Shown here piece by piece: positions 1-23,436 of a stretch of 64,000 nt of DNA (within the stretch, counting starts at the first letter, position 1; each line of letters starts with the position of its first letter). Below the pieces are notes generated by a model. That model searched no databases and had not been told where the DNA came from. It worked only from the letters and a program-made list of their open reading frames with translations. Position numbers and translations under genes: made by a program. This DNA comes from Auanema rhodensis. Lineage: Eukaryota > Animalia > Nematoda. The DNA lies in contig OZ059899.1 of NCBI GenBank assembly GCA_964057225.1, positions 15,500,001-15,564,000 on the forward strand. Direction: 5' to 3'.

Positions 1-337
1 CACCACCTACTACAACACTGGTTAATGCAAGCCATTTGATCCATTTTCCTTAAAATACAGAATCTATGCTAAGAGAAGAGAATATATTTGCTTAGATACT
101 TTTAGGTACTGAAGCTTTCTCTATGATCTTAGCAGTAGTAGCAGTAGCAGTAGAAGTAGTAGAGGATCCTTCACTTAGAAGTTTTGAAGACGTTTTGAAA
201 GAACGTACACTCAGAGGATTTTCCTTTAACAAACATTTCATCAATATTCATTTCATAGAACTTACTTTGAAACTTTTGAGTAATTGAGCTTTATATAGAA
301 CTGTGCCACGAAAAACAGGACGAATAACAGAAAACAT
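1..337 (-). CDS. Phosphatidylserine decarboxylase paralog A, 5' part only (runs off the left edge), with mitochondrial presequence-like N-terminus
   Basis: Exons 337-266 (MFSVIRPVFRGTVLYKAQLLKSFK), 223-100 (ENPLSVRSFKTSSKLLSEGSSTTSTATATTAKIIEKASVPK) and 48-1 (RKWIKWLALTSVVVGG) joined by GT-AG introns. Exon 3 aligns codon for codon, with the same phase-1 intron position, to exon 2 of the complete PSD at 16421 ([16 protein letters not shown]). The catalytic domain is not visible in the window. Confidence 0.8.
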
Positions 338-506
338 CTAAATCCATGTGTTTCCTAATAATAAAAAACTAATAATGGTATTAAAGGTTTATAAACCTTC
401 AAATAAGAAACGAAAGAAAGAAAACGTGACAATTGAAAATCCATAACAATAACAGAAAAACAATAAATTTTAAACAAAAAAATAATAACAAGTAATTCAA
501 ATTTTC

Positions 507-2168
507 CTATAAAAGTTGTTCCAATCTCATCGTCAACTCACTTAAGGTAACCATGACATTTTCTTCTACTCTTTCTGTGAAAGAACCTTTGTTTGGCAAG
601 CTGTTAATCAGATAACTGAAAGCTTCCTGAAATACGGGAAATTAAAATTTGTTAATAGGAAAGAAACTGAATATCATACCTCTGGTGAGGAATATTCCCA
701 AGATTCTTCAGTTTCGAAGACTACATCTACACCTTTCACACCTCCAAAAACCAGCAAAATTCGTCTGAATATATAAGCTTTTACTAGAAATATAGTTGAA
801 CAAGAAACTAACAAATCGGTTAAGGTACTAATATTCAATTCACTAACTGGTTGACCTTTGGGAGATGTTCCTAATATGTAATTATATTTATCTCTATAAT
901 ATTAATATTAATTAGTTTTAATTAATTTTAAAAACTCACTTTTTTATAATATCTTTCAAACTAGTAGCAAAACTAACAGAATATCCCCAATATGATCCTG
1001 TAGTTTCACGAACATGTTTAGCACTTGTAAGACTTCCTTTGAATTTTTTTTTGGCTGAAAATTAAAAGATTTGAGAGGTAAAGTAAAAAGGTTGAGAACT
1101 ATACCATCATGTAAATTAGAAATTTCCACAGTTACTCTTGTACCAGCAGGCAAATCAACCTCATCTACTAGTTGAAGATCCTGTAATAATAATAATAATG
1201 TTTTCTTTTGTGAAATAATCGAACCTTATCAAGACCAATATCACATAAAGGTCCTTGGCCAGCTTTTATAGGCTTATTTAGTACTATACCTTCCCTAAAT
1301 GGAATGGAAAGGTTATCACTTTTGAGATGATGATGAGCATCAAGAGGATTGAGAAGACCTGAATTTCAAAAAAATTCGATTAGAAGGAACAGTTGGAAAA
1401 TAATACCTGCAAATTTCAAAGATCTTTGTTTTGGGAACAACTGTTTTCTAAGATATTGAGGGCATTCCAAGTATTCCAAAATCTTTGCAAGAATAAAACA
1501 AGATTCAAAATTATGGTCTGAAGGTTGAATATCTCCATACCAACTTCCAGAATAGTATGAATCGATTGATCTAAATTAAGATCTTTACAATACACGAATA
1601 ACGATAGTTCTGTCTCACTCTTGAGTCAATTTTGAAGTTTCGTCATAAATAATGATTTCTTCTACACAAAACAGAGTAGCAGCACGAGCAATCTAAGATT
1701 ACATAATTATCCAATTATAACCAAACTCGTTAAACATGAGTAGCTAGAAACAAAAAAAAGAAAATCTATACCTGGCCAGCCATATATGTACGAAGTTCAC
1801 CACTTTGCCCATTATTCAAAAAAGATCCAGGAACGGCAATAGAGATGGAATAAGCAGGACCTAAACAATACTTTTTCTAGTGTTAGGTTAAGAATCGGAA
1901 TAACCTTTGGTTTCCTTTGGTTCATCTTTTTGTTTCACAATAGTTTGTTGTTCTTCATACATTCGTATAAGCTTTTCCTCACGCTTACTGGCAGTTTCTG
2001 CTTTTCCTTGAAAAAAATGTTTTATTAGCTATACATATATCTCTTCTAAGCCCTACTCTTTCTCCAATTAACTGATTCTCCTACATTACTAGGTCCTTTA
2101 TTCCTAAACAAAGTTGCTCTAAGTTTTTCTTTTTGTTTTGACGTTATTTTCTCTGGAACTTCCGTCAT
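507..2168 (-). CDS. SPOUT1: SPOUT1/C9orf114 (CENP-32) family SPOUT methyltransferase, about 11 exons
   Basis: Spliced translation gives family motifs SISIAVPGSFLNNGQSGELRTYMAGQIARAATLFCVEEIIIYDE, ILEYLECPQYLRKQLFPKQRSLKFAGLLNPLDAHHH, FREGIV, GTRVTV and C-terminal INSLPNKGSFTERVEENVMVTLSEL. ATG at 2168, TAG at 509-507. Confidence 0.93.
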
Positions 2169-3014
2169 GATTTGTCCTTAAATTAATAGCATAGGTATTT
2201 AAAATAAATTTAAAAAACAATAGATTTAAAAAAAATTAAAATTATATAAAATAATATAAAAAGCTGTATACATGAATATATTTTTAAATTTTATTCAATC
2301 GCAAGAATTCATTTTTGCGACTAATTGCGTATATTCTTGCGCAACTGTTACGTCTTTTAAATTATGTGAATATACTATATGAACATTGAATTTTATATAA
2401 TTTAATTTTCAAAGCTCAAATAGTTTATCATACTATTGTTCTTAGTTTCTATATGAATTTCAAATAATTCAAATTAAAAAAGTTTTGAAATTCATTTAAA
2501 ACATACGAGTTATGTAACTTACAGTAATTTCAATGAGGGATATTCCCCATTGTATTGTATTGAATATAATTTTTCATATAATTTTATTTATAATTTCAAA
2601 ATAGTGGATGTATTCATTATAAGTAAGTAAAGGAGATTTCTTAAATATGAATAAAATCTAAAGTTTATAATAAGTAATATAATGCATTTGTTGGCTGGAT
2701 GGGACTTAAAACGAAATTGAATATGAGTCTAAGATTACTGTAAGAAATATTACTTGTATGTTTTAACTGATATTTACATCTTTTTTTGATTTTATTATTT
2801 TAAAATTCATATAGGACTGACGATAGTAATTGATAAGAAACCTGTAAAAGCCGGAGTATCAAAAGTCGAAATGAGTCGCAAATTAAAAAAAATCTAAAGC
2901 ACTTGCTAGATAAGATTTTAATAATTTATATAGGAGCAGAAGCATTGATTGGATGCGTCAACATTAGTTTCAGGTGAGTATGAATTGTGGATTGAAAGGA
3001 AATAGATTAAGACA

Positions 3015-3051
<37 letters not shown>

Positions 3052-4851
3052 GGAATGGTTGAAATTACTCATAATGTTATTGTGTGCTTAATAGAATCAT
3101 AAAGATTCAATCATGAAAATATAGTTATGTTCTGATGAAATAGATAGTACGTGTTCGATTTTCAATGATGTGAGGATCAAGCTGGCTGCTAAGCTTTTCA
3201 AGCCAATCAATATTTATGTTTTTCAACAGATTTTAATAAGTTATATGTTATGAAGCATGTATTTCTTGTTTGTATTCATTGTGTAATATTGAAAGCTCTT
3301 CATATTGGATAGGTTATAATACAAGCTTTGGTAATAAAAGTAGTTTAATCCATTCGTTTGAACCTCACTACGTTCTGCACGACGAGAGTAAGTTACCATA
3401 GTAACCATTAAGCATACTGCGAGCATAAATAAAATTTCTTTTTCTATATAAAATCTCTATAAAAATTTATTATTTCTTTGTTTTTATATTAAACTATTCA
3501 TCTTATATTAATAGTATTGAGTTTAAATATGATTTTTCTGAATTCAAATAATCAAAACCTTAAAATGAAACATACAAAAGGGTTTTAGCCATTGTTTGAA
3601 AACTTACTTCTTCAAATTCTCATTGATTTTGTCCATATTCTAAGCTTTTGTCTCTTTCAAATGTTTTTGGCATCAATGTTCATGCTTCTTCCGAATCATC
3701 TTGAGAGTAAGTTGGAAGAAAGAGCCACACATTCCCATTAAAGCTCAAATGAATACCACAACACGTTCGAATAGAGTACAAGTCTTAACTGTATCTGATT
3801 GTTTGTGCATTTGTTGCTAAGTTAAATCTTTCTTTATTAAAAGTTTATTTGAAAATTACCTTTTTAACAGAAAAATGTTGAGAAAAGCGGAAAATGAAAA
3901 TATTTCAAAGTTTCAGACAAAAGATTATGAAGCCATGACATTTGCTCGGATTGTTTATCCGGTTTATATGGTAATGGAGATCATATTTTCTGAAACATCA
4001 ATCATTAGAGATTAATACTTTCCTATTCTTTTTGTTTGAAAAAAATGAAAATAAAAAAAGAAAAGTTATCATTCTTGCTCTCTCTCATTACCTTTCTCTT
4101 ATATGTATCCTCTTCTCTCTCTCTCTCTCCCTCTCTCTCTCTCTCTTTCTCCATCTCTCTCTTCCACTCTCTTCCTCTCACACACACCTTATCCCATTCT
4201 CCTAATCCACACAACGATTTCTTCTTTCAATCTCTCTTTTTACCATTCTTATTACTTTTATTCTTTTTTTCTCTCCATCTCTACTATGTCATAATTTCTA
4301 ATTCATTTCACAATTCTCTCATTATTATTGCATTATATCCTCCACCCCTTTTTTGTCTTTTTTTCCATCAGTAACACTTCCATCTTCATATTTTCTAAAC
4401 CATTTAACACTTCCAAGTATCGACACCGATTGAGCTTTTCACATATTGTTGGCTCATCTGCACATTTTGACGAAACTAACGCCAAACCTTCGAACGGAAT
4501 CGACTCGTTTCACTTTCCTCATCCTTTCCCTTCCATTCTTTCTCTCTCCCCCACCTCCTATCTCTCTTTCTCTCTCTTTATCTTATACATATATGTTCTC
4601 GCGGCCTCTCCTCAACATGAATATGAGATGATTCGGATGCTTTCACGCTACTGCATGTCCACATTGTCATCAACCTTCATCTAGACACTGCTTTCCTTTT
4701 AATAACTTTGCTCTCTGTTCCTTGCATCAAGAATTAGTTTTCATTGTCCTCAATCAACTTCCTTTATCGAATGACTTCATACATATTACCCATATATAGC
4801 GCACTTGCCAAATCATCACGCATTTTTTCTGTTTTTAAAATAATTCGTCCC

Positions 4852-6210
4852 ATGAGTGAAGAAGAGCGTAAATGGCGCGAAGAACGGGAAAAAGTACTCG
4901 ATGAATGGAGTGAGGTTAGTTTCAGATTCTAGCTTCTAACTCAGATTATGAGTGACATCATACTTGTCTGACACCCATCTATTTCTGCTTTATTTCATTC
5001 TCAAACAGCTTCTACTTGAAGATTGAACTGAAATTCCGATCCGGAACTCCAATACGCATAGAAATTACTCGAGACAGTGTTGATGATGGTAATGACATCA
5101 TCTGCGATCAACCTAATCATTGGTCCGACGATTGCATGGAAGATTCATTGATGAACAGAATATTAAATGATAATTATGATATTGAAAAGGTTATTTCCTC
5201 CTTATATAACCAGAAATATATTATAATCGTTTGATTATAGGCTACAATCAGTAATGTTCAAACAAACGATGAATTCTCTGTGAATAATCTGGTGTTTCGC
5301 TGCATATGTAAGCCATCAAGCACTTCAGTGGTCCAGAGCGAACGCCTACGTGAAGAGAAGACTTTACTTCTAGCTATGAGCAAGAGTGAGTGTAAATTAT
5401 GTTCCAGTTACACATCTTACATATAGGAGCTTATTCGCCTAAAAACCCAGACCATTGGCAACTCTTGTTGGAGTTCTATCGTTCATCTGCCAGTTTAGCA
5501 CTTGACGATCCTATGCTAGCCAATGAATGTCCTCCTCAAGGTAGTCATTGGCAAATTGTTGGATTTCAAGGTGAGAGTTCTGCATGTGTGAGCTCGTGTT
5601 TCAACGGCAAACACAACGAGATAGATAGATATGTATAGAATATGTAACGAAAATAAATATTTTCAGGTACAAATCCATCGACGGATCTACGTGGAGTAGG
5701 TCTTCTCGGCTTAGTTCAATTATACTGCTTAACGAATCTTCTCCAAGAAGAACATTTGAAAGAAATGATTATTCTATCACGCAATGAGCCAAATGTAGTT
5801 TTCTAAATCTCTCCTTACATCATGAATGTCAATCTTACTTATAGGATTTTCCATTTGCGGTCGTAGGAATCAATTTTACGGCATTATTATTAACAAAATT
5901 GAAGCGTGATGAGCTTAACAGGTTTCGCATTGCAGCATATTCTTCAAAACTTTTCCTAATTTCAGCTTGGCTAATAATTTCGGTAGTTTATTAAAGGCTA
6001 TGAATGTCTTATATAAGGGATGTTTCATACAATTCTGTAAATTATGGCAAAAAAATAATTGTACGGTTAAGGACTTCCAGCATATCTTAAACGGTAATAA
6101 TAAAATGCTTCAAGTTTCATTTAAGTATGCAAATTCATTCACACTTTTCAGCGATTTCCGCAATTTTACGAAAGGATCCTAATCATCTTGTTAAAGCTAC
6201 ACTGGCATAA
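4852..6210 (+). CDS. ELMO domain-containing protein (ELMOD family, ARF/ARL GAP)
   Basis: Spliced protein MSEEERKWREE...GSHWQIVGFQGTNPSTDLRGVGLLGL...DFPFAVVGINFT...FCKLW...KDFQHIL. WxxxGFQGxxPxTDxRG is the ELMOD signature. TAA at 6208-6210. Extra 5' exons are possible. Confidence 0.9.
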
Positions 6211-6586
6211 GACGTATGTTCAAGAAGATATTGGAAAAGCTCATAAATTCTCCCAAAATACGTGGTGAACCATAACAGGAATATTATGAAAAGAATTGTA
6301 AAAAGTAAAAATAAAAGAAATTCTGAGTCAGAAACTGATTCGAAATCATATATTTATGAATATCAACATAGAAAATGTGAATCAGTGACAATTTGAAATA
6401 GAAAAATTGAAACAAAAAAGAAAATTTATCGAATGTTACTGAAATGATACAGTTTGGTTATGTATACATATGAAGCGGTGTTTCTGATATAGATATATAT
6501 ATTAGTAACACATAGAAATTAGGAAAAAATTAAATTAGCGTATGTACTTAAGGCCGTCGAAGGAATGTGAAATCATTAGAAAAGGC

Positions 6587-7314
6587 TTATTGCTCATCCT
6601 TATCTTTAGTTCCATGCTTGAGCATACGAGTAAACTCGATGTAATCAAACATGCCTCCTTTGATGGGTGCGTCGCGGAAAAGCTCGTCGACCTACAACAG
6701 GAATTTCAAAATAAAGTAAAACACAAAAGAAGTGTTGATGATATAATAAAAGAAATAAGAAATGAAGTACACACCTGCTCATGAGAGTATCGATCTCCCA
6801 TACTTGTCAACAGTTCCCTTAATCGCTCTTCGTTTAACTTACCACAATTAGTTTCATCGAAACATTGGAACGCATTTCTTATAACTTCCTCAGGATCAGT
6901 ACCTAACATTGATTCAAACATTATATGGAACGAAGAAATCTTAAGCTTACCGGTTAGTTTTTCACCAAACAAAGTCAAAAACATGGTGAAGTTGATAGCT
7001 CCAGGAGCTTCATTAACCATAGCATCAAGGAATTGATCATTGACTTCCTTTCCTAAAACAACGTTTATTACAGAAAAAGTATTTTGTCGAACCTAGAGAA
7101 GCAAACATCTCTTGAAGATCTGCCTGATCAATGAATCCATCTCTATTCTGATCAATCATATTGAAAGCTTCTTTGAATTCCTAATTAAAAAAAGTAAATG
7201 ATAATACGATATATCGATAAAAACCTGAATCTGAGCCTGATCGAACATAGCGAACACATTCGAGGTGGCCCTTTGAGGGCGCTGTCTTCGGTTCACGGTC
7301 TTACGAGAAGCCAT
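6587..7314 (-). CDS. mlc-4: Non-muscle myosin II regulatory light chain
   Basis: Five exons give [48 protein letters not shown]...[27 protein letters not shown]...[20 protein letters not shown]. Contains the RATSNVF phosphorylation site and EF hands. Confidence 0.97.
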
Positions 7315-8681
7315 CTACAAAAATTAAAAATTGAATCTTGCAACATTCTTGTAGGATATAAGGAATGAGGACGAGATATAACATCAAGATGTGCGAATAT
7401 TAAGCAAGGTCATCATAAGACAGATCGTATTAAGGATAAATCAGGAGTAATATTGTAAATATGATATACTTATCGTTTTTCATATTTCATATTTTTAAAT
7501 TTTATAGAACATACGAAGAAGAAAGAAACGAAATATGTCAATCGAGAATAAATTGATTATTTTTCTGTAATGACAAATCAAACTATTGGAGTGAAGTGTG
7601 AATGAAAGCTGTTTAAATTACAATCAAAATATGAATTGAAAACAAAATAAAAATAAAATACACACTGTAAACAACAATTATAATATGAGAAAGCAGAAAA
7701 GGTCACAGGCTATCAACTATAATTTTACTTTTTCTTCAAAATTAGCTGATAGTAATACATAAAAATTCCAGAAAACAAATACTAAAAATCTAGTTTCGTT
7801 AGAAACTTCATAAATATATTATTTTTCCTTAGAAATATCAATAAAAAATATAGAAATCTATTTTCTGATGACTTGGTTTGAGTTTGTTATGCGTGAACAG
7901 CCTGTAAGGTACGGACGGACTATCTGAAAACTGTGCGCGCCAAATCGGATTCAATCGATACCACCACCTCCTCCATTCGTTCGATCAACTAGCGAGAGAT
8001 AGGAGGTACAGGCTAAACAAAGACATCGCAGAGAAAAAGAGAAGAAGAATGATCCGAAGTAACGTTGTGGGCGCCAAGACTTGAATACGCAAAGAAAATA
8101 AAGGCCCCAAAGCGGGCTGAGTCATCCTCAAGAACGCACGAACGACAACATCACATATGATCTGTCCAAAAGCAAGAGGAGTGCAAAGAAATTACAGATA
8201 TTTACAATGATCCACGAAAATCGGTCGAGTATCTTCAAAAATAAGAAATTTCCAAGAATACTCAGAAAATAATAATATTTATCTGGAGAAAATTGGTACT
8301 AATAGTACTTGCATGCGAATACAACCGATCCCTTACGTATAAAAATTAAAATGAGTTTTAAAATGCTGATCTCTGCGTTTTCATGGTTCATGACAAAGAT
8401 AAAGTTAATGTAAAAAATTTTAAAATCGTAATTGAAAGAACAATCACATGTAGTTTGAGTTGAAGAAATTAAGATGTGATAAGCTATCTTTGAATGAACT
8501 TTGAAGTCTCTTTGCTGCAAAACATGTTCAACGAGAGAGTCAGTTCAGTACGTGCTGGTGAATTATTTCAATCGATCTAACTGCTATTAGTTTTCTGTTT
8601 TTCTTTCAGTGAAATCCTTTTGCTTTCCTAATGTTTCTTAAATTTTTGAATAAATTAGCGATTAACAAAATCACATTTAAG

Positions 8682-10252
8682 ATGTCTTTGTGTCAGCGGT
8701 TACTACTTCAGAGGACATTCGCAGCGTTGCCGGTATGTCCGTTCCACCACTTGTAAAAATACAAATTATTTATATTTTTTAAAGGTTACTTCCATGGCCG
8801 GAATCACAACTTCATCAGAAGAAGTTCTGATTAGAAAAGCTGGGTCAAATCGTATTATTACATTGAATAGACCAAAGGCTTTGAATGCCTTAAATTTGAA
8901 CATGGTCAGAGACATTTATCCTCAAATTAAGGTATGCTTATTCGAAATCCAGATTAATTATGAAAATTTAATTAGAAATGGGAAAATTCAACTGAAATAA
9001 AAATGATTATTATCAAAGGCTCGGGTGATAAAGCCTTCTGTGCCGGTGGTGATGTTTTAGGTATTCCAAGTTTTTCTGATTTTTAATAATCTTTAGTGTT
9101 TAGCTGTAATCAAATCTGCCAAGGAGGCTCAAAAAAATCCTAAATCCGATATCACTCTTCATAAAGATTTCTTCAGGCATGAATGGCTAAAATCAGTTTG
9201 AAACAAAATTTTTATTACAGAGAAGAATACCAATTGAATCACTTGATAGGATCACTTACTAAACCTTATGTAGCTTTCATTGATGGAATAGTAATGGGCG
9301 GTGTTCGTAATTTATAAGAATTTTCAAATTATATAAGGTTATAATAGGGATGTGGACTCTCAGTTAATGGCCAATTCCGTGTTTCTACTGAAAAAACCAT
9401 GTTAGCTATGCCTGAAACAGCTTTAGGCTTATTCCCTGATGTTGGAGGATCATATTTCCTTAGTAGATTAAAGGTTTGGAATCTCTCATTTCTGTATAAA
9501 CGAATTAATACTATAGGATAATCTTGGCATGTTCTTGGCTCTTACTGGTTATCGTCTGAAAGGAGCTGATGCTTTCCATGCTGGTCTTGCAAGCCATTAC
9601 GTACCATCCACTGAGCTTCCTAAGCTGGAAGATGAACTCTTAAAACTTGAAAAAGTAAATGAACAAACTGTTGATTCTGTTATTAGATCGTTTGAACCTT
9701 GCGATCTTCCTTCGTTTTCACTTGAAGAACATATTGCTAAGATTCGTAGCATCTTCCGTGGAAAGTAAGAATGCCTTTCCACGTTTTTAATTTTTGTTGT
9801 AATTGTTTTAGAACTATTGAACACATTATTGATAATTTGGAGAAGGATGGATCTGGTTGGGCTAAAGACCAGCTTAAAACTTTATCGAAGATGAGTCCTA
9901 CTTCTCTTAAGGTTACGTTCAAACAAATTGAAAATGGAGCCAAAATGAGCTATGCTAAGGTTTGTTAGAACTCTGTTAGATGTACCACATTCAATCACGT
10001 TCAGGTTTTCACCATGGAATACAGACTTACTCAACGTTTCCTAGCTGATCATGACTTCCACGAGGGTTGCCGTGCAAGTATGTTTCTCTCTCCTCTACTC
10101 CATAAGACTGATTCCACGTTTTAGTTTTAATTGACAAGGATAGAAACCCAAAATGGAAACCAGCCCAGTTGCATGAAGTTACTGATGGTATACTTGATAC
10201 CTATTTCTCTCCTCTTCCTCATGGACAGGACCTTATCTTCTATGAAGAATAG
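8682..10252 (+). CDS. hach-1: 3-hydroxyisobutyryl-CoA hydrolase, mitochondrial (HIBCH)
   Basis: Ten exons. Motifs [92 protein letters not shown]. Presequence-like N-terminus [20 protein letters not shown] at 10250-10252. Confidence 0.96.
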
Positions 10253-10651
10253 ATATAAATATATAGATAATTTGTTTTTTTTTAGATATTAATGTCTGTT
10301 TCGGGTTTAAATTAAGCCATATTTATATAAGACTTTATACGAGACTTATAAATTTCTTCAAAGTAGAATATGTCAGAATGAAATTATAGAACCTTAATAT
10401 TCAAAAAGACACAAGTATATACCAGTACAAAGGTTGAAAGATCATATTGGCTAGTAAAGCCGAATAAAGCAAGAGTACATATAATTCATAAGTATTGAAC
10501 ATGACCATATGAAACACAAATAGGGTAAAGAGGGAATATACAATTATATGGATAAGAGGAAGAGTTGCACTCATCATATGAAATTATTAAAACTGTTAAG
10601 TATTAAAATTATTACAATGATAATAATGATAATAGTATTGGCGAAGAATTA

Positions 10652-12273
10652 TCAAAGATTTGAAGCTTTCCATTGGTCGCGAATAGATGCCAAAATGGAA
10701 ATTCGACGATTGAGAACGTCTACAGAGGAATCTTGACTCGATTCATATACCTTGTGCAAGATTTCTTTTAGCTGAGTAGTTGCTTCACCTCCGGGGGGAT
10801 AGGAAAAACCTCCGGTAGTTGTAGGTCGAACTGCTTTTGGGGTAATGAGGCCAGCTGGTGGCTTCACCTATGTTTTATAATTAATTAAAATTATAATTAT
10901 ATGAATACATACCTCGTTTACGACATCAATTTCTTCGCTAGTTTCATCAAGCTTGGGCTGAATGGAAGGAATCATTAGATTTGCTTGATTCATGGTGAAT
11001 GGTGACATGTTCTAAAGAATAAAAACTCAGAATTTAAATAAATTACTATATCTTACTAAGAGAGATGTAACACCCAATTGGGAATTAATATCAAAGACAT
11101 TGTTAAAACCAAGTTTGGTAACATCTTCCTGTCCTTGTTGTGCCAGTCGTTCCAGGCTTTCTTTCTGTTTTTGAAGATTATGTTGAGCTAGCAATACATT
11201 GATCAGCTATAACGTGTATAAGAATATATAAAATAATTTGCCAAAAGGGAAATTACCTGTTGTTGATAAAGAAGAGCAGCTGTAATGTTAGGCATGCCAG
11301 TAGCAGGTGCAGGGGTTATAACACCCGAACTTCCATTGCTCTTACAGCTGATGGTAGTGCTAGATACGGTACTACTTGGGCTATGAGGCGCTGTTGGGGA
11401 TATGGAAGGTGGAGATGAACTGGATTGTGATAATGGAGAGGCTGGAACTTGATGTTCCGACTTTATATTGCTGAACCGCCGTATCTTTGTGGATGCAGGA
11501 GCTGAAAAAGTTGTTTAAAAACTTGAAATTATGCTGTTTAGAAACTCACATCTTCCACTTTTTTGACTGAGAGCAAAATGATGGGGATCAGTAGGATGAT
11601 TATGCTCCACATTTAAAGTTGTAATACGTAGAGCTTTTTCATTAAATTTATAATTGAGACGTAAAACAGCCTGACAACCACATGCCAAATAGTTTTTGCA
11701 AGGTCTTTTGCCAGTTCCTAGAAAGATATTTGATTTCGAATGAAAAAAGCTACAATGTTCTTACCTCTAACTCTAGGATTTCCATAGTGAGCACAGTGAT
11801 ATACAACATAACGATATTTATGTACAGAATTGATTGATCCGTTAGGTTCTTTTAAAGTTTCTGACGAAGCCACACGGAATGGGTGACAACCAGCTTCCTT
11901 CCATTTGAGGAAGACTTCCTCAAACTCAGCAAAACTGAAGAAAACAAAATCATATGAAAGGCAAGTGAATTCAAAGAAATACCTGTTGAATTTACCATCA
12001 AATTCGATCTCAGGACGACCAGGCCGATCATATGAATTCTCATCGTTAAGAATTGAATTATTCTTAGAAGATTGTGAAGTATCAAGTTTTGATGAATGGT
12101 CTGATGAACTGCTATCACTATCTTGAGCTGGATCAAACCTAACTCTTTTGGATTCTGGCTCCAGAATCTTAAAATCCTACATTAAACAGATATATGGATA
12201 ATGTTAGAAAACTCACGTTAGCATTGACATTGAAAGGTAAGTTATATCCCATCTTAAGACATGTCTCAATCAT
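10652..12273 (-). CDS. Protein with a ZSWIM3-N/FAR1-like (WRKY-GCM1 superfamily, MULE-derived) zinc DNA-binding domain and S/P/Q-rich C-terminal half; putative transcription factor
   Basis: Spliced domain FNSFAEFEEVFLKWKEAGCHPF...KYRYVVYHCAHYGNPRVRGTGKRPCKNYLACGCQAVLRL...LRITTLNVEHNHP, with C...GC...HNH ligands. NLS-like PESKRVRF. Last exon matches ORF 10652-10867. Start codon uncertain. Confidence 0.8.
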
Positions 12274-14762
12274 TTCACAATACTGGCCACGTACAAGAAA
12301 CTGCAATGTTTTAAATAGAAAATACAATATTTCAGCAAGAACATATAACTAAATAATGAGATAAATAGAAGGGAAATAGAAGGGAAATAGAACATATCAT
12401 ATAAACATTTACTAATAGATAATTGAAAGGATAGCAACATCAAATTTCAGAAGAAAACCAGGAGCGCTATATCTCGACGACCAGCTAATGGAGCTAATAA
12501 AGAAGTAACTGACCTATGAGCAGAAAGTTGGTTGGTCCAACCCAAATATATCTTAAATTTTCTGCTTCTTTTCACTCTCTCATTCTGACACTTCTCTATA
12601 TCCATCAACCCAGAAAATGACAGTACCATGCCAGAAGCATTATGATCATAAAGGCAGTGCCGCATATTCAGTAGTTAAGAGATTGTGAACTAATGGAGAT
12701 TTAGGCAATCAGAGAGCCTGGCAATCTGTCCAAAAATGTATCTGCGAGTGCCGTGTAACCAGGAGACATAATAGTCATGAACAAGAGCCACATTCTCTCA
12801 CTTCTACTCCCAAGACTAGGTTACATATTGAGTCAAAGTCATTAAAAAAAGAAAGACAACAAAATACTCTTCTAGCTCTATCAAACACTTTCCGTACTAC
12901 CATTGGCACTGTGCCATGCCATTAATGACCCATATATGTAAAAGGAACTTTCTTCTATATGCTTTATATGTATAAAAATTGATATTTAGTAAACTTGTAA
13001 TCGTGGTCTGGCAAGAAATATCTGTAACTAGTCATAACTGATCAAGATTTCCAAAAACTACTCGTATCATTCACATGATAACCACGTTAGGTCAAACGGA
13101 GATTAGCGTTGGAGCATCAAACTAAACTAAAGTATTTGAAAAAAAAATTTTTTTTCAAATATTTCGAGGTCCCTCCATCCTTTTTCTAATGTTATTTTTT
13201 TATTAAATTGGTAAAGCTTCAAAGGCTTACAACCGCTTTCAACGTGTCTCTTCAAATGAATTATTTTTTTCACGTGATATCGCCACTTACAGAGTTTGAT
13301 TCCTGTATTTATGATTCCCTGGTCTTGCTTTTTCGTTCATTTTCAGTTTCTTTGTGGAATCTTATTGTAAAAGTTGAATAGAAAATAATCATTTATCAGT
13401 ATCCTATTTTGGTGTTGATAACAATCGTCTGTCCATCTTTCGATGTCTATATCCGGTGTTATTTTATAGGCAATATAGAAAATTACTTGAAAATTACAAC
13501 AATAAAACTGTGTTTTCTTGAATTCATTAATAAAAAGTTAAGGTATTAATATATTCGCCAGATATAGGATTAATTCAACTAAATAGGAAAATATCTTCGA
13601 TTATCACAATTGAATGAATTAATACTTTTTCTTGATTTGCTGTAGATCTGAAGGCTAAATACCTCCGGCAATTGGTTAAGTATAATTGATTTTAGATAAA
13701 AATATGTTTCATGACCAATTCTTTTATCAAAATTATCAACATTTTGATAAATAGCCTTGTTTTCTTAGGTTTTGACTATCATACAATACAGAACTCATGA
13801 CACAAAGCGAGGAACACCACGAATTATGAAGCGGAACAAGCTTTTTGCAAAATTTTGATTAGAAACACTTTTTGCCTTAGAAAAAAGAGCCGATTGATAA
13901 CAAAATGATATTAGGACAAAACAGTAGTACAACATCATGGGAACTTACAAAGATTTTACTGATTTATTAGCTAACAGCTAAATTCTATTTGACGTTTTGT
14001 CCTTGAGAGAAAAAGAGATATGGAAAATTTTTTTTGTGGAACGTAAAGACACAAACGACTATCTCTTTTTGTCTATAACAGACAAAAATGCTATGATAGC
14101 TAGCCAATGAAGACGAAAAATCAACGAGATTAAATTGAAAAAATGCATTTATTACCGTAATCGTTTAATGATATTTTAATATAATTAAACTAATACATAC
14201 ATCTATATATATATATATATATTATATATTATATAGTTAATATACACAATTTATAAAATAATAATAATATTATTATTATTATAGAAATACAATGATTGGC
14301 TTTTGCACCCTAAAAATGCTACAAGTCATGGAAAAAAAATATAATACAAATAAATTTACAATTGAAGACTAACTAACTGAACTAACTAAGGTTTTTCTAA
14401 AATTAATTTAGAAAATGTATAACAATCAATGATTTTTCACATAAAATATTTGAAATAACTAGAAATTTTGGAAGAAAAACAATGAAAAAACATCATCTAG
14501 TCCTCCTTGTATGGCTATGCCTATGGTATATGTATGATGATAACCTGATGTTTATACACATAAGAAGAAGAAGAAGAAGAAGAAGAAGAGGATGAGGAGG
14601 ATGAAGAGGAAGAAGAGGAGGAAGCGGACGAAAATCCTTCAAAGAATTGAAAAAACCCGCAAAATCACCGAATCTGTAGTTATGATGACCATGATTGGTC
14701 AACCCTGATTACGGTATTTCAAACAAAACAAGGTCCGAAAGAGTGAACTACTCTTCGGCGGC

Positions 14763-16904
14763 TTAGATATCACCAGAAATAAGTGTTTGACCAAATTGAA
14801 GAGGATCTCCAGCTTTGATTGAAAACTTGATGGTTGGTGGAGCTTGGAAAACCTGAAATATGCTTTTAAAAAGAGAAATACTCAAGATGTAGCTGATACC
14901 AAAGCAATAGTTGATCCTAAGCGGAATTCTCCAACTCGTTCTCCTGCTACGAATGGAGCATGGATTGGGACATCAGCCAGCTCAAGCTTCTTGCCCATTC
15001 GTCTGCGAAGAACATTTGTTCGGAGATTGGGTTCCTGAATAGAATGAGATGAGGACTGTAGAACTTGAACAGAAACTTACAGCATCAATGACAATGTCAC
15101 CAACATTGGTAGCTGCAACAGCTGACATGGAGAAGAAGCCATGCTTCCAAGTTCCATTCAACACAACACGTTCGTTCAAACAGAAGAGATGAGGAACATG
15201 GCAGAGAAGAGAAGGCTTAACGGAGAGTAGAAGGCCTGAAACATAGAAATACTTGAAGTTCAAGAAAGAAGCTGAAGGTTTTACCTGGAACATGACGGCA
15301 TTGTCTGGCTACCCATCTAGCTGGACTATGGAAAGCATGATAGTTTCCAGGAGCCAAGTAAATGACAACTTGATAGAGATCAAGTTCATCCTAAATTAGA
15401 CAAATAGAAAGTAAACAAGAATCTGCTTCGAAGAGGACAAACCTTCTGAGATAGTTCGACGTCGCCAAGAAATGATTCAACATCATAGTCATGTCCTTTG
15501 ACATATTCAATCTTTCCATCTTCAACTTTTCCAAAATGAAGTACAATTCCATCAGCTGGTGACACCTTCAATTATTTATTTTCTTTATAATTAAATAAAT
15601 AAAATTATAATTAATATAACTAACCAATGAACTATCACTTATTGGACGTGCTTCTTTCTTTAATTTTCTGTTGAAAAATTCAGAAAATGAACGATAAGCC
15701 TGAAGAAACAAAAACATTTTCTTTCAAATTATCTTTCAATTTAACCTTCAAACTTGGCTCAACAGCCTCTTCCATGTTGCAATCATAAATTCTTGCAAAT
15801 ATTCCGAGGAATGGCTCTCTTAACCATACCGGAATTTCTTGGCTTGCTAATCCTCCTACAACTCGTGATGCTGTATTGAACGGTAGAGAGAGATATGTTC
15901 TTATCTAAAGTAATTGCATTATCAGAAGTAATGATTCTATGAATTTCCGGTCATGAAAACGGTATATTACGGTCTTTCTTTGCTAGATCCCACCCCCTTT
16001 TTTAGCTTTTACCCGCAATCAATTAATGTTTTTGGTAGGTTTGGAATTTGGAACCAAACAGCAATAAGCAAAATTCTTCAGATTTTAGGGTTGCAAAGCA
16101 ACAATATAGCCTCGAAGAAAGAGCAATACACGTAGACATGTTGGTGAAATACTTGGACATGTGAGCCTTATTGCCCAACTGATAAGAATGGATTATATAT
16201 TTCGGAGATGCAGAATGCAATGATCACTGACCCAATTATGAGGAAAATACAAGTTTTTATAAGAAATTTGAAAAGCCAAGAAGAAGTAAAACAAACCTTC
16301 CAATTTGAATAATAATGTTTGCTATCAACTATTTCTCTCCAATCAGGAGTAAAGAGATATCCTACGTAGGTGAGACCACCGAAAATGATGCTGCTCAATG
16401 AAAGCCATTTAATCCAGCCCCCTACAAAAATGAAAATTAGTTTATTAATTTGAAATTCAAGTTAAGATGTTCAAATTCAAAAAAATACTTAAAGATCTTT
16501 AGTATTTAAAGAATTTTAAATTATTTAAACTCAAAACACATTTTGAACCAAGTGATACATGTGTATCATGGCTGTTCGGTCTTTGAGGTTTCAGGACTGT
16601 TATCTTCGGGACCGGATACACTAACAGCCATGATATGTATATCTTCTTAGAAAAAATTTAAAACATTTTCTAAATAACAGAAAAAAGAAAAACCAAATTT
16701 GATGTTAAAGAATAAAATGTGACAGTTAAGAGAAGTTGAGAGATGTAACTTCAATTTGAATTCAAAATGAAGTTATAACTCAAATTCACTAACTTCATGA
16801 AAGCGAAAAAAAAAGAGTTTGAACTCACATAAAGTGAAGAGCACAATGAAGGGATTATACATCATTTCCACGCAGATATATGCTGTATTGACGAAGAAAG
16901 ACAT
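14763..16904 (-). CDS. psd-1: Phosphatidylserine decarboxylase proenzyme, paralog B (complete), with a short hydrophobic N-terminus
   Basis: Nine exons. [32 protein letters not shown]...[19 protein letters not shown]..., [32 protein letters not shown] and the self-cleavage motif [12 protein letters not shown] at 14765-14763. The start could instead be the downstream MM. Confidence 0.93.
16559..16640 (+). other. Long imperfect hairpin in PSD-B intron 1 (candidate structured ncRNA or tiny inverted-repeat element)
   Basis: ATGTGTATCATGGCTGTT (16559-16576) pairs with AACAGCCATGATATGTAT (16623-16640), 18 bp including 3 G.U pairs. Inner stem CGGTCTT/GGGACCG. Confidence 0.5.
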
Positions 16905-16999
16905 ACTGCCAATGGTGGTAAGGAATAAAGAAGTTGATGAGTTGATGAAAACACTTTTGATTCAACAGTCTTGAAAAGAAAAAATTATCAGAAAACGAC

Positions 17000-19900
17000 A
17001 CGGAAGCAATTGATAAAAACTTCAAAAGTGACGAACAGCTGACGATATTTGCAATAAAAAATATGCCGAAAAAAGAAAAGATGCTAACGAGAAAAGATGC
17101 TGGATAGAAGAAGATACGTGGCTTCAGGCAGTTGAGACACTTGCTCTTTAGCACACTATTGCGACAACCAAAACTGACATGCAGTCGAAGACAAGTCAGC
17201 TTTGGTCGTTGTCTACTATGATACATGTAGATGTAGCTGCTTCCTTTTGTGTTTGAAGTTTCACACTCGAGTTGGAAAGACAGATGTAGCAGTGAAGCGT
17301 CATCTAAGAGACATGGAGATATGGAAGGCAAGTGGAGCAAAAACCGAAATTGAAAAGAGGAAATGCGAAGGCGAGCATAATGGCAGACGACGAATGGGAG
17401 AACAGTCGACAAATTGAAAGACGTGCATAGCAATGAATGGAAAAAAATGAAATTGTAAGTGTCTGAACGAGACGACACAGCCCTACAACTCATATCCAAC
17501 TGAGCGTGGGCCAAAGTACTCTTAAACGCCAACTGCCACATGGCTTTTAGGCACTTTTTCTCTTTCTCTCTCTCTCTCCCTCTCTCTCTCTCAGTCATCT
17601 ATTCTACCTTTGGATCTCCCGACTTGGATGCTATTTCTTCTCAGTTTTACTCAATTTTTTGTTTCTTCTCACATTTCAGTTATTTGAAGTATGCTTGAAC
17701 CGTAAAAATAAGGTGTTGTAGTAAATGATAAAAATGTTTCAAAAAGGTCAAAAATATGTTTTCGTCTCATTTTTGACATAAACAAAACTCTTTTGAGCAT
17801 TAAAAGAGAAGGAATAGCCGGTAGCAAAGTATGAAAATAGAAAAAAATTAGAACAGTGACAACGAAACAGCTGACAGATGAGATGATACCCATGTGGATA
17901 GTGATCAACTTATCTCAAAATTGTCAAACAAAAAAAGAAAAACAATATTTCTGCGCTAATGGTAAAGATCATTGAAGCATTAAACAGCTGATTTGAAAAT
18001 AAAAAAGGATAATATGATAGTTAAGAGAATTAAAAGATATTAAGAAATGAATAGAGATGTAGATGAGACACACTCATCTAAGTTCAATATTCATCATCTA
18101 GTAGTGATTTGAAGAGAAAAAGTGTTGCTGTAAAGGAAGATAATACTTGCTAAGATTCATAGTCAATTGAGAAGCGATGATGTGCAATAAATAAAGAAAT
18201 ACTGTATGAATGAATTGAAGAAAAGGGCCATTGACAGGCTAATTTGCTTTGTCTTCACCTTACCAGCTAAACTCCCCCCCATCACCGTCACCGTCGCTAC
18301 TACTAACTACCCTATCGCTTGTATTACGACAAATGGCATTTCTCTGTTCTCTTTTCTTCCTAACATCATCGAATGTGATCACTGGCATGTTATAGCAAGT
18401 TCAAAAACGGGAAAAATAAAGATTTGTTCATGGATACTAGCTGAGAAAGGAAAGGAAAACCATCATCTACAACACAACTGATGAGATTTGTGGGCAGCTG
18501 ATCGAAAATATGTATTGAAGCGATGTTATCAATGATGATTGGTGAAAGAATTAAAACATTGTGGACGATAATCATGTTCACCAGAAGACGAGTAGAAGAA
18601 GAAGAAGAGGGGAGTGGCAGATTATCAGTTACGATATGTTGATTCAACATGAACCTTCGGATGAGATGAAGCTAAAGAGTTAAAGAGAGCACCACTAGAT
18701 TATACTCTTCAGATGGATATTGCTGAACTATCTATCAATGAGACACTAATGTTAAGAACATGACAGATAAGGTGATAGAAGGGGGGGGGGGAGTTTGCTA
18801 GAAGGTTTTGTTGAGAAGAGAATGATAAGAATTGAAAAGCAACAATATTTATAGGATCAAGAACAATCAGGTCACTGTGTAAAAGGGCTTAGCAAAAGGC
18901 AATACGATTGGTAAAGCTGAGAGCAAGTGAAAGAAAGGAGAAAAATTGAACTTTAGGATGAAGTTTATGGTCAAAGGTTGTTTTCTGTCTAGTTTCTAGT
19001 TGATACATTCTCTCTCTCTCTCTCTTTCTCTTACTCTCTCCCTCTTTACTTCTCTATCTATATCCAATCTCTCTCTTTTTATACTTTTACATACATTTTA
19101 TAATCTACTACTTTTTATTTTTTTAGATTCATCTTGATAGTTCTTGATCAAAAAATTCATGGCATATATTGCCCTCGGCGATAAGGAAGACAGCAACAAT
19201 CAAGAGAAAAACAGCTTGGTCTATCAGCAATAACTGCGACAGGCAGCACAAGGTATATGGCGGTTCCGTTTATGATTCATGAAATGTGTGTCTTGGTAAA
19301 GAGTATACACTATAAATGGCCGCTGGTTTGAAAAGAATTGATGAAGACGTATGGATGGCCCAATCAGAAGATAGGAACTACCATGTCACTTGTGCCAAGA
19401 AAGTTTCGATCAAACAAATCAAATATCTAACAATAAACTCTTTTGTTTCAACATTTGGAAAGTAAATTGTCGTCTTTAACAGCAGATCGTGGTTGTGATA
19501 CTGGCTGATTGGAGTAGCACAAGAGTCTTAACACGACTGTTACTAATCGTCAAAGTAGTTTCATATGTTGTGCATCTAAAGCAACACCAAATTTCAAAAG
19601 TAATAAGGTGAGACAAGGGGGGGAGGGCGAAAAAGACGTCGACAGATCGAAGACAAAGATTGATGCTGATGTGCAAAGCGGAGGTGATAGGACGACTGAT
19701 GAGCTACAAACAGATAGGGAAAGCCAGAAAGTTATACTATTGACGTCTACGTTATTCCTTGCTAAGGAACCAAGCTGAGACAGCTGATTACGTGAGTCAA
19801 GAAAGCACATGGATGGGAGAAAAACATAAGTTCATGAACGCTCTATTGCCGAGAGGTTGGCGAGTTGGAGAGAACAGATAGAGTGAGAGAGAGAGAGAGA

Positions 19901-22900
19901 TAGAGATATGAAGAGACTGTTTTCGGCATCATCTGAAACATCCGCTGTTTTTATTTTTGGAAAGTAGTTGGGGTAAAAAGAGTTTTTAGGTTTTGATACA
20001 AGACACAAGAACAATCCAATACAGCAACTGAACTAAGATCTTCTGTACAGCCATGCTATATGAGAGATAGTTAGCAAGTGAATGAAAACGTTCGAGAACC
20101 ATCAGATGGTCTTATCGTCCAAGTGTGGCGTGAGAGAATGCTATTGCAGAAATGGGTGAAAAGGGGGAGGGGGCTGTTGGCTTGATGTTGGCTGGTAAGA
20201 AGAAGAGGCTTTTGTGGACGGTGAACCTGGACTGGATGAAATGCACGTGAACTGGTAATCGAGACATTGACGAGAAAAAGTAATGAAGATGCTGGCGGAG
20301 AGAAAGAAAGAGAGAAGGTGGGGGTGTAGTTGACAGTTAGCTCGTTGTGTGTCTAGATGGACAATTAGCAGAGACGGGGGTGAGTGCTGGATATGTTGCT
20401 TGTTCAACATACATCTTGCTTCTCTTCAGCAGTTTTTAGATTCACCCTCAACTACGTCTCTCCTACTTGTGCATAGGTGGCGGTATATGACGACAAAGAA
20501 GATGAAGACGACAACGAGAACGACGTTGAAGAGAACGAAGAACTAGAAGCGAAGCTTGGACAATCAACATTTCAAGAAGAAATCAAGAACATTTTTTTTT
20601 TTGAAAAAACGTGCTCTATGAGCTCGTACTGAAAGAAAAATTGAAAAAATGAAAAGAAAACTGAGAAAAGGAGAGTGTGAGAGGTAGCAGAATTGCAAAG
20701 AGAGTACGATTTCCGTATAGTAACCTGTGTATCTTGTTCATTTCAAATGAAACCTGAACGAACATACTGCTTTCTTACATACATAAGAAGGAGAAGAGAA
20801 GAAGAGGGTAACAGAGCTGTTAGTGTGATGAGAGGAAATGAAAGCAGAGTCTGTTGTTTCATCAGTAAAAATTTGATACACGAAACAAACCAAAAAGGCT
20901 TGACAGAGACAGACAACAAACGAACGAGATCAAATGAAGAGACAGACGAAATTCTACCAAAAATTGCTCCGAAAACATGTTTGAATTAAAAAAAAAAGGA
21001 AAAGAACAATGAAAACGTCTAGTAAGCAGGTGAACATGGTCATAATGAGGTTAAATAAAATGAAAAAAAAGTTAATTTGATAGAGTTAATAATGGAAAGA
21101 AATTCAAAATATGTGATGATTTATGATGAAACATACATGTTATTATAATTAAAATCAATAAAAGTTATAATAATAATAATTCTTTTGAACAATAACTATG
21201 TACGAAAAAGTTTGAATGAACAAAAACTTGTTTAAAATTTAAAAATATGCAATAACATACGAATGAAAATGGTATTTCTTAATACAAATTGGTGAGGGAG
21301 CTGAAACTTAAGCTGATAGAACTATGAGGGAGTTAGTTGTTTTCAGTTCAAAGAAGTAAATGAGTAGCAAGAAAGTCAGAAAGGGGAGAGAGAGAGAGAG
21401 AAAGAGAGAGGGAGAGAGAGAGAGAGAGGGAGAGAGAAGTTAGTTCAGAATAGTCAATAATAGAACACAAATCGAAACTGAGAAGACTAATCTATTCATA
21501 AAGAGAAGTGGATGGAATGAAAAAATGTAGTTTATGGGAAAGTTCATTACGAGAAAAAGAAAGAAAGAGAGAGAGATTGAGAAGAGGTGAGAAAAGGTGA
21601 GGGTGGCATAAATATTTAAAAGATATTATCTGAAAAATCTCTGCAATTCTCTATTTTATCTCGTATTATCTTTTTCTCTCTCTCTTTCTATCTGTTCATT
21701 TTCCTCGATCAGCTTTCAACATGAAGGGAGAGAGAGAGAGAGAGAAAAAAGAAAGAAAACAAGCAACACATATGTGACGAAGATGACGACGTCTAAGATG
21801 AACATGAAGCCAACTGATGAAACAACATGAATGAAGTTTTCACATTCTAATCGGATGAGAATCTCAAGTATCAGAAGTTGAATAGAAAATTGTTTTAAAT
21901 TCTATTTTGGCACAAAAAAGGCTGGCTGCTTCAACTGCTGTTACTGCTGTTGTTGATGTTGCTGACAAAAGCCAGCAGAAACAGAACGTACCGAATAACT
22001 GGTGGACGGACTGCTCGACTGACTAAAGGAAGAAAGCAACAAAAAAGACACAACATCTTTTCTGTTCGTTCAGATATAACAGCATCAACAACAGAAGCTT
22101 TACCACGACTCAATTACTCATCAGCATTACTCAGTAGACTATAACATGATGTAGAAAAAGATTGATGAAGTGAGGAAGATGGATGGTAAAGTAAGGTGAA
22201 TTGGAAAGAAGAAGAAGAAGAAGAAAAAGAAGAAGCTTAGATGTTTCGCGCGATAAACAACAAACTTCAAAACAATATTTCAAAGATATAGAAATTGACT
22301 TACATTAGATGGAAAAGTATAAATATCAGCGAAGATATAAGCAGCGTAGAGAGATAAGAGATAGAAGAGAAAAGACAACAACTGCAACCATATAACTGAA
22401 GTAGTACATGAAGCAGCAGCAGAAGAAGAACAAGCCTTGAGTTCAGATAGCTAACGATGAGATGATTGCATAGATTGAAATGGAATAACATATCAAAGCA
22501 TTGAAAAATATAATTATTAGAAGTTGAAGAAAAGGACGTTTGTGATGAATATAGAAGGAGGAGAGGGGGAGGGGGACGCCAGTAAGCAAGAAAAGAAATC
22601 AATGAAAGAGAAATAGGAAATCAAAGTTGAGGAGGGCAATATGTTGTTTAGTTCGTGCCTATAACAATCATTATTTTGAAAACAATGATGACGATAAAGG
22701 ATAGTAATGGTAAGAAATTAGAGTGATAAAGAGGGAAATAGAAAGAGAGGGAGGAAAATAAAGTGAGAAAGAGAGAGAGAGAGAGAGAATTGTGATAACA
22801 GGTGAGAAAAGTTATCTGACAAAAGGTAAAAAATGATGACGTGAGGACAACTTGTTCAATGACTAACCCGAGGGGAAGTGCAATTGAAGAAAGGGGGAGG

Positions 22901-23099
22901 ACGATGAAGATGAAGGTGTTGATGATATGACGATGATATTATACGGATTGTATAATACAAATATTAAAACTCAATGTATTCTAATAGAATTAATTATAAA
23001 ATTAATAGTAAAAATAAAATTATTTATACTTTTATATATATTTAAACATTTTTTATCATAAACAAAATGACGACGACGACAACGAAGCGTGGGAGAATT

Positions 23100-23172
<73 letters not shown>

Positions 23173-23404: not shown

Positions 23405-23436
<32 letters not shown>

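Follow-up and report, generated by a model that had tools for sequence, protein, structure and literature searches.

Why does a nematode carry two genes for one phosphatidylserine decarboxylase (PSD), with almost identical catalytic bodies and different N-termini? The question is raised by a 64,000-nucleotide stretch of the Auanema rhodensis genome (assembly GCA_964057225.1, contig OZ059899.1, positions 15,500,001 to 15,564,000; hereafter the window), where two PSD genes, copy A and copy B, lie on the minus strand, copy B 16.5 kb upstream of copy A in the direction of transcription. Our answer, which we hold with good confidence, is that the two alternative N-termini of an ancestral psd-1 gene have been divided between two separate copies, whose bodies have been homogenised by gene conversion. 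A preliminary description of the window had proposed that duplication split ancestral splice isoforms, and this is supported by the isoforms of Caenorhabditis elegans, by the one-gene layout of C. brenneri and by the exons found here in copy A only or in copy B only; the concerted evolution of the two gene bodies is a point absent from that description. Coordinates are window positions (G000:C7:15500001-15564000), and negative numbers denote DNA to the left of the window edge, which was fetched to complete copy A.

Structure of the two genes

A profile scan of the whole 181-Mb assembly found two PF02666 loci only, copies A and B, on the same contig and strand. Both pass the PF02666 cut-off exon by exon, and both proteins contain SPADG, YHAFHSP and EFRLGST, motifs whose columns are invariant across 26 nematode sequences. 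The Asp/His/Ser maturation residues and the LGST motif have been named for the Escherichia coli enzyme (PMC7952604). In best local alignments the two proteins are 74-86% identical to PSD-1 of Caenorhabditis and of Auanema sp. JU1783. By domain and motifs, copies A and B are assigned to the type-I phosphatidylserine decarboxylases (PISD/Psd1/psd-1), with predicted activity.

Copy A spans 337 to about -1264 (stop codon, G000:C7:15498736) on the minus strand in ten exons, and its model of 386 amino acids (aa) has zero stops and canonical splice sites throughout. Its 5' part, which leads into a transmembrane (TM) anchor, is in the window:

266..337, minus strand: copy A exon 1, with the ATG at 337, 24 codons, phase 0, encoding the presequence-like leader MFSVIRPVFRG... 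(from sequence and gene model)
100..223, minus strand: copy A exon 2, the basic, S/T-rich end of the leader, with ...PK(R)K directly ahead of the TM segment
49..99, minus strand: copy A intron 2, 51 nt, GT..AG, joined in phase 1 onto (R)KWIKWLAL from 48
1..48, minus strand: in-window part of copy A exon 3, which runs to -76 and codes the TM anchor WIKWLALTSVVVGGGTYVGYLF

Seven exons beyond exon 3, carrying the complete PSD domain, lie to the left of the window. The sequence, phases and 51-nt intron (99-49) given in the preliminary description were all found correct on re-reading, and the leftward extension that it had proposed as a check yielded an intact gene, no pseudogene, continuing into a full PSD domain with SPADG, YHAFHSP and LGST. 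By composition, the leader of copy A has 66 aa with 12 K+R and 3 D+E, followed by a 22-aa TM segment. An out-of-frame ATG is present at 347-345, 10 nt upstream of the start codon, and TTTAG immediately 5' of the start codon is a candidate trans-splice acceptor, which could remove the out-of-frame ATG (window 338-350).

Copy B (16904-14763, minus strand) has nine exons and an intact 347-aa product, and the peptide of its first exon contains zero K or R and one E. Its features, including the patches in which it has diverged from copy A, are as follows:

16971-16970, minus strand: trans-splice acceptor AG for the spliced leader SL1, placed by RNA contig ends and an SL1 tail
16829..16969, minus strand: copy B exon 1, with the 5' untranslated region (5'UTR) at 16969-16905, the ATG at 16904, and 25 codons plus 1 nt ending in (W); joint seen in all four RNA runs
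16828-16422, minus strand: copy B intron 1, 407 nt, with a phase-1 junction onto (W)GWIKWLSL
16297..16421, minus strand: copy B exon 2, with the TM anchor and, in the 5' part of the exon (16419-16369, aa 27-43), diverged patch 1
15746..15904, minus strand: copy B exon 3; bases 15901-15788 (aa 69-106) are diverged patch 2
15699-15625, 15565-15443, 15390-15285 and 15235-15081, minus strand: copy B exons 4-7, with SPADG and HAFHSP; a conversion tract, matching copy A at 96-100% identity in exons and introns alike
15034-14900 and 14852-14763, minus strand: copy B exons 8-9, containing the LGST self-cleavage site and, at 15019-14903 (aa 279-317), diverged patch 3 with a 1-codon indel
14331..14762, minus strand: 3'UTR and flanking DNA of copy B, sharing 98.6% identity with the DNA downstream of copy A; homology stops abruptly at 14331

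The RNA evidence consists of assembled contigs from four runs of a single study, with zero mismatches to copy B. Seven of the eight copy B introns are spliced out at GT..AG sites; as for the eighth (15624-15566), read placement skipped the sequence around it as repetitive, and the contigs run on across it. The joint 16420->16828, from the 25-codon first exon to the exon beginning with WIKWL, occurred in each of the four runs, no other joint into the acceptor of the WIKWL exon was found in them, and their RNA depth was zero from 17036 to 20200, upstream of copy B. On the 3' side the contigs extend to 14294-14296. Every contig at the 5' end stops at 16971, and one of them extends with CAAACTTGG. 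Its reverse complement, CCAAGTTTG, followed by the genomic AG, corresponds to the 3' end of nematode SL1. The common stop and this tail indicate that copy B mRNA is trans-spliced, with a 65-nt 5'UTR free of upstream ATGs. The copy B of the preliminary description (16904->14763, an uncharged 25-codon exon, a phase-1 junction) is thus a transcribed gene. The same description had found no A-type exon upstream of copy B, in agreement with the RNA joints and with a tblastn search of the window plus 8 kb to its left, which returned one B-type exon and one A-type exon pair and no second of either.

Two N-termini across nematodes and the ancestral gene

Nematode PSDs were collected by a single-exon search and then by full-length searches with database proteins. 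The B-type leader of copy B recurs in Auanema sp. JU1783 (near identical to copy B), in unnamed transcript assemblies and in several Caenorhabditis, namely C. elegans, C. briggsae, C. nigoni, C. remanei, C. brenneri, C. japonica, C. bovis and C. angaria; a more diverged form is found in Dictyocaulus viviparus. These leaders are 25-29 aa long and follow one pattern, in which a short start, neutral or acidic, leads to NPF, six hydrophobic residues and W, joined in phase 1 onto (G/S)W.KWL, and they contain no K or R in 8/8 species and 0-3 acidic residues. A-type leaders, known from C. elegans, C. briggsae, C. nigoni, C. brenneri and Haemonchus contortus, have 58-67 aa with 11-12 K+R, 1-3 D+E and a polybasic cluster at the end, and the polybasic end of copy A is common to those of C. 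elegans, C. brenneri, C. nigoni and H. contortus. The annotated isoforms of C. elegans psd-1 (B0361.5; UniProt Q10949) verify the alternative N-termini that the preliminary description had mentioned: isoform a (348 aa, NP_001021127) is B-type and isoform b (377 aa, NP_001021128) is A-type. Alignment of the N-termini to them, also suggested there, matched copy A to the isoform b type and copy B to the isoform a type. C. briggsae and C. nigoni have the same A-type/B-type isoform pairs.

In C. brenneri both ends belong to one gene. At this locus (L008) a PF02598 gene at 8305-9743 is followed by the A exons at 10001-10226, in the same two-exon layout as in copy A, and by a 5.4-kb intron (about 10226-15656) that holds the B exon at 15115-15195; the shared exon starts at 15656, so that the B exon lies about 460 nt upstream of it, to be compared with the 407-nt intron of copy B. 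In C. angaria and D. viviparus a PF02598 gene is likewise upstream on the same strand, with an A-like exon near it (weak matches, tblastn E 0.003-0.004) and the annotated B-type start 3-4 kb further on, and in a gene model of Aphelenchus avenae (P0018) PF02598 is fused to PSD. The corresponding neighbour in A. rhodensis is the following:

510..1876, minus strand: PF02598 (Methyltrn_RNA_3, SPOUT1-like) gene, six exon pieces matching PF02598 positions 2-302 in order

On the same strand, about 170 nt separate its end from the copy A ATG, an operon-like spacing that suggests copy A is a downstream operon gene. Copy A thus keeps the PF02598 synteny with no long intron left: its 51-nt intron stands where the single-gene relatives have an intron of 3-5 kb with the B-type first exon inside.

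These layouts indicate that the ancestor made both forms from one gene. Each paralog has since lost the form of the other, copy A having a 51-nt intron and, apart from the one in copy B, no B-type exon in the window or the 8 kb to its left, and copy B having a single joint into the shared exon. We propose that ancestral psd-1 was a single gene whose 5' end came in two alternative forms, an arrangement retained in Caenorhabditis and probably in the strongylids. One end would have consisted of two short exons just downstream of the SPOUT1-like methyltransferase gene, for a basic mitochondrial presequence with a polybasic cluster at its end, preceding the TM anchor; the other would have been a first exon with its own start inside the next multi-kb intron, for an uncharged hydrophobic leader (..NPF, six hydrophobic residues, W). 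The gene would then have duplicated in a lineage apparently including Auanema sp. JU1783, each copy keeping one 5' end. Copy A would have stayed at the ancestral site, where shrinkage of the intron to 51 nt would have removed the B exon, and copy B begins with the B-type exon, its mRNA being SL1 trans-spliced and its long upstream region carrying conserved elements. Intrachromosomal gene conversion would keep the catalytic bodies, introns and 3'UTRs near identical, with three patches staying diverged: the TM helix, the monotopic membrane-binding helices and the loop before LGST.

Other PSD arrangements were encountered in the same collection. C. remanei has a second, truncated B-type PSD copy (L013, CM021146.1:2618682-2638148; gene 8001-11467), with the B-type first exon and the shared exons for aa 1-180, the LGST half being absent; it is about 95 kb from psd-1, beside F-box/FBA_2 genes, and would have arisen by a separate, partial duplication of the psd-1 transcription unit. 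Pristionchus pacificus (P0009) and a related metaclust entry (P0186) show a third N-terminus, a long acidic disordered leader ending RRRRRLIRRLQ that joins the (I/M)RTYFSLP exon directly and bypasses the TM exon, and these two entries may represent a TM-less PSD isoform of diplogastrids. Models of H. contortus (P0152) and Cooperia oncophora (P0200) carry another leader, ...RITYGG.WPVV...ADDWW, with the same phase-1 W onto GWAKWL; it is not hydrophobic like the B-type exon.

Mosaic divergence of the gene bodies

The homologous DNA of the two copies begins at the WIKWL acceptor (A 47 / B 16419) and, introns included, ends about 430 nt beyond the stop codon (A -1697 / B 14331); a self-comparison covering the window's first 30 kb together with the adjoining 8 kb on the left found no further A/B homology. 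The 103 differences over 1743 aligned bases are strongly clustered, and the longest identical run, 304 nt, was reached in none of 10,000 shuffles. Synonymous divergence (dS) and the nonsynonymous-to-synonymous ratio (omega) are distributed as follows:

227 codons outside the patches: 4 differences, dS 0.014
Shared introns: six of seven 96-100% identical between copies A and B
Diverged patch 1, copy B aa 27-43: TM helix
Diverged patch 2, copy B aa 69-106
Diverged patch 3, copy B aa 279-317: 1-codon indel, loop before LGST
Patches 1-3 pooled: dS 0.93, omega 0.21

This mosaic of near-identical and diverged tracts is the pattern of concerted evolution by gene conversion, and its simplest reading is an old duplication whose bodies have been repeatedly homogenised. 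It follows that the overall similarity of copies A and B cannot date the duplication. The many substitutions cited in the preliminary description against an assembly artefact are in reality clustered and interrupted by long identical tracts, although its rejection of the artefact still stands. Our literature search on PSD together with gene conversion returned nothing relevant.

The three patches appear to be under purifying selection (omega about 0.2). Patch 2 aligns with approximately residues 8-45 of E. coli PSD (structures 7cnw/6l06), which form amphipathic helices for monotopic membrane binding (PMC7952604). With the TM helix of patch 1, this would make two of the three patches membrane-contacting, and we infer that selection may have kept the patches apart.

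The seventh shared intron, intron 2 of copy B, has 343 additional bases in copy B, which are unique in the genome and belong to no repeat family. Within them, the translation of 16183-16212 (minus strand) is weakly like the B-type exon (tblastn E 0.11), a resemblance that may be due to chance or to the decay of an exon copy; unspliced contigs of low depth are found over 15998-16173. Both 3'UTRs contain a (CTT)n/(CCT)n microsatellite (window 14552-14630 and A -1420 to -1470), in which some of their few differences lie.

The alignable DNA begins exactly at the WIKWL acceptor and is mostly 99-100% identical, introns included, as would be expected if copy B were a recent 5'-truncated duplicate or pseudogene whose first exon is a chance open reading frame (ORF). 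Such an origin is highly improbable: exon 1 is spliced in all four runs and its mRNA bears the SL1 tail, the exon has a near-identical counterpart in Auanema sp. JU1783 and can be recognised in C. elegans isoform a, and the dS of about 0.93 in the patches is that of an old pair. We regard a recent truncated copy with a spurious exon as ruled out by the splicing and SL1 tail, the patch dS and the exon conservation.

Age of the split

A B-type gene is also present in Auanema sp. JU1783. Of the 32 shared sites at which copies A and B differ, its protein has the B residue at 19 and the A residue at 3, and both the 1-codon insertion of copy B and the ASQE motif of copy B (ANRE or ANQE in copy A and the outgroups) recur in it. 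In a tree of the patches alone, copy B groups with Auanema sp. JU1783 (support 92/87), and copy A forms a long branch (0.4 vs 0.1 for B). Within 10 kb upstream of the JU1783 B gene (locus L011) neither a PF02598 piece nor an A-type exon was found, and a tblastx comparison of these 10 kb with the window found no upstream gene in common, only three short elements:

18818..18884, unstranded: conserved non-coding element 1.9 kb upstream of the copy B ATG, 87% identical to L011:8464-8531, collinear
20085..20152, unstranded: conserved non-coding element 3.2 kb upstream of the copy B ATG, with CGATAAG, 92.6% identical over 68 nt to L011:7151-7218
23989..24040, unstranded: conserved non-coding element 7.1 kb upstream of the copy B ATG, 90% identical to L011:3818-3869, collinear

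All three elements are collinear and 87-93% identical between the two genomes, as compared to 74-81% for the coding DNA. The long upstream region of its own that the preliminary description ascribed to copy B is gene-poor and includes three elements conserved with Auanema sp. JU1783. An Rfam search of 16900-27000 gave no family at the conserved elements and only sub-threshold matches to a palindrome near 21.7 kb. This palindrome (window 21664-21761, about 90 nt and perfect-looking) had matches to unrelated miRNA precursor models on both strands (24-32 bits vs gathering 55-150) and is probably an inverted repeat.

The shared elements and the B gene free of A-type exons suggest that the B gene, with a conserved regulatory region of its own, probably predates the divergence from Auanema sp. 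JU1783. Since the databases hold no A-type protein from that species, the age of the split is probable rather than shown, and the evidence on it is suggestive only.

This second genome also bears on whether the second copy could be an assembly artefact (haplotig, collapsed or expanded repeat), to which the long identical tracts might point. The flanks of the two copies differ, and between them lie three unrelated genes, with ORF pieces at 5399-5635 (plus strand), 6709-7020 (minus strand) and 9529-9765 (plus strand) that match ELMO/CED-12 and EF-hand (both below the Pfam cut-off) and ECH_2 (enoyl-CoA hydratase/isomerase family, 59.8 bits), so that the PSD copies are dispersed and not strictly tandem. 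The copies have diverged patches and different 5' ends, the B-specific RNA contigs show zero mismatches with a separate A-like form also seen, and the B locus of Auanema sp. JU1783 has the same upstream elements with its 10 kb free of A-type exons and PF02598. An artefact is thus next to impossible, being ruled out by the differing flanks, the diverged patches, the RNA contigs and the JU1783 locus.

Copy A as a probable working gene

Copy B is expressed in all four runs. In two of the four, a joint 15805->16297 with unplaced letters between was seen on copy B; we read it as a copy A transcript because exon 4 of copy A is too diverged there to align, and it is indirect evidence that copy A is expressed. 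Copy A could instead be a decaying duplicate, with copy B as the working gene. The long branch of copy A on the patch tree would fit this, as would the outgroups, which at the sites of difference match B some two times as frequently as A (the conserved PVWLREP, for example, reads PMSIRES in copy A). The depth of the B-specific contigs equals or exceeds that of the contig ascribed to copy A (a weak measure), and the housekeeping role that the preliminary description gave to copy A is at most putative. The ORF and splice sites of copy A are nevertheless intact, omega is about 0.2 in the patches, and the A-type transcript is probably present in two runs. Copy A is moreover the sole presequence-encoding gene, and mitochondrial PSD is essential in other animals (PMC7938800). 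We consider decay of copy A improbable, and a division of the isoforms between the two copies remains our preferred explanation.

Several points weigh against this explanation. Monophyly of A and B on the patches is not rejected (approximately unbiased test, p-AU 0.094), and an A-type protein of Auanema sp. JU1783 is missing from the databases. The sole RNA trace of copy A is the joint in two runs, and the SL1 tail on copy B comes from one contig and measures 9 nt. In UniProt the two C. elegans psd-1 isoforms are both labelled 'mitochondrial'. Finally, the RNA comes from one study in the form of assembled contigs, in which rare isoforms may be missed.

Predicted targeting of the two proteins

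The presequence pathway requires a basic amphipathic leader, and the topology of Psd1/PISD is established: presequence, polybasic stop, TM segment and a catalytic domain in the intermembrane space. By composition copy A fits a presequence followed by a TM segment and would be this classical form, with presequence, polybasic stop, 22-residue TM helix and intermembrane-space catalytic domain, probably imported to the mitochondrial inner membrane. Copy B has the TM segment and a leader with 0 K+R. It replaces the presequence and polybasic cluster by uncharged hydrophobic residues, and would not be imported by the presequence route; the protein may be a PSD in another membrane or topology, inserted as a signal-anchor protein of the endoplasmic reticulum (ER), on lipid droplets or as a signal-anchor protein of the outer membrane. 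The ER or lipid-droplet location and the two-compartment synthesis of phosphatidylethanolamine (PE) envisaged in the preliminary description are conjectures from the composition of the leader. A low-confidence AlphaFold2 model of the B-type protein of Auanema sp. JU1783 (mean pLDDT 65), to which we give little weight, has a helix at 2-16, a break at N17-P18 and a single continuous helix at 18-49, with no hairpin.

The split might also concern regulation and not compartment, both proteins being mitochondrial, copy B reaching the inner or the outer membrane by way of its TM segment or internal signals, with one operon-driven and one independent promoter. The TM anchor and all that follows are shared by copies A and B, UniProt calls both C. 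elegans isoforms mitochondrial, copy B has conserved upstream elements of its own, and mitochondria remain a destination of both human PISD-LD and fission-yeast Psd2 (PMC7938800, PMC8886813). Set against this are the charge of the B-type leaders, which in 8/8 species replace the polybasic cluster ahead of the TM segment by a peptide free of K and R with 0-3 acidic residues, and the need of the presequence pathway for a basic leader. In addition, the conservation of the B exon between Caenorhabditis and Dictyocaulus speaks for the importance of the peptide as such. We consider a purely regulatory split possible, though somewhat doubtful.

With the division of isoforms between the copies as the basis, we tentatively suggest, as a conjecture that may well fail, that the B-type leader defines a PSD form off the presequence route, conserved from Caenorhabditis to the lungworms. 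Its TM helix would be lengthened, and it would act at a site other than the inner membrane, such as the ER, lipid droplets or the outer membrane and its contact sites. This form would be independent in origin of vertebrate PISD-LD, and its membrane parts would be held apart from those of copy A by selection against conversion. If true, one enzyme would have been adapted to two different membranes.

Comparison with known systems

The closest likeness is to C. elegans psd-1, where the same two N-termini are joined at the same position to (S/G)W.KWL, the A-type leader being a basic presequence ending KKKR and the B-type leader consisting of NPF, hydrophobic residues and W. Caenorhabditis differs in having one gene with alternative first exons and a single copy of the shared exons, whereas here there are two genes 16.5 kb apart, each with one start, and two copies of those exons, homogenised by gene conversion. 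The locus points to C. elegans isoform a as the form of interest; no paper treating the two C. elegans isoforms separately was found in the literature. Our search found nothing on PE synthesis by an extramitochondrial type-I PSD in an invertebrate, while such synthesis has been described for yeast and vertebrates (PISD-LD). The B-type N-terminus is old, conserved and strongly expressed, and in A. rhodensis the two forms are naturally separated into independent genes with their own regulatory DNA, which opens the question to gene-specific tools.

Vertebrate PISD-M and PISD-LD resemble the nematode pair in that alternative 5' exons give different leaders to one type-I body and one form is exclusively mitochondrial. 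The PISD-LD exon is reported to appear first in fishes (Kumar et al. 2021, PMC7938800), and PISD-LD has no predicted TM segment, a Pro-rich hydrophobic segment with an amphipathic helix and a mitochondrial signal that is kept (PMC7938800, PMC8886813). The worm B-type form, by contrast, keeps and lengthens the TM helix, which follows a leader of 25-29 aa with no basic residues. It is thus analogous and not homologous to PISD-LD. The human PISD analogy drawn in the preliminary description accordingly holds for the alternative 5' exons and the functional logic; it fails in that the exons are not homologous and the lipid-droplet form keeps its mitochondrial signal.

Yeasts likewise have type-I PSD activity in more than one compartment. 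Budding-yeast Psd1 is dually targeted to mitochondria and ER (Friedman 2018, described in PMC8886813), and Schizosaccharomyces pombe has separate genes for a TM-bearing mitochondrial form and a second form, Psd2, which still reaches mitochondria (PMC8886813). The differences are that budding yeast uses one polypeptide, that SpPsd2 lacks a TM segment whereas copy B keeps it, and that the nematode forms are known from sequence.

As to the evolutionary process, the same was described for SKI7/HBS1, an alternatively spliced ancestral gene that was resolved into two paralogs, each keeping one form (Marshall et al. 2013, PMC3597508). That case concerns fungi and other proteins; in A. rhodensis what varies is a first exon that brings its own start, and the paralogs continue to exchange sequence by gene conversion. 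Division of isoforms after duplication is thus a known process, to which this locus adds the concerted evolution of the gene bodies and the conservation of the B-type form. It may serve as a compact example in which gene conversion has re-created the 'shared exons' of the ancestral gene and left the membrane segments distinct.

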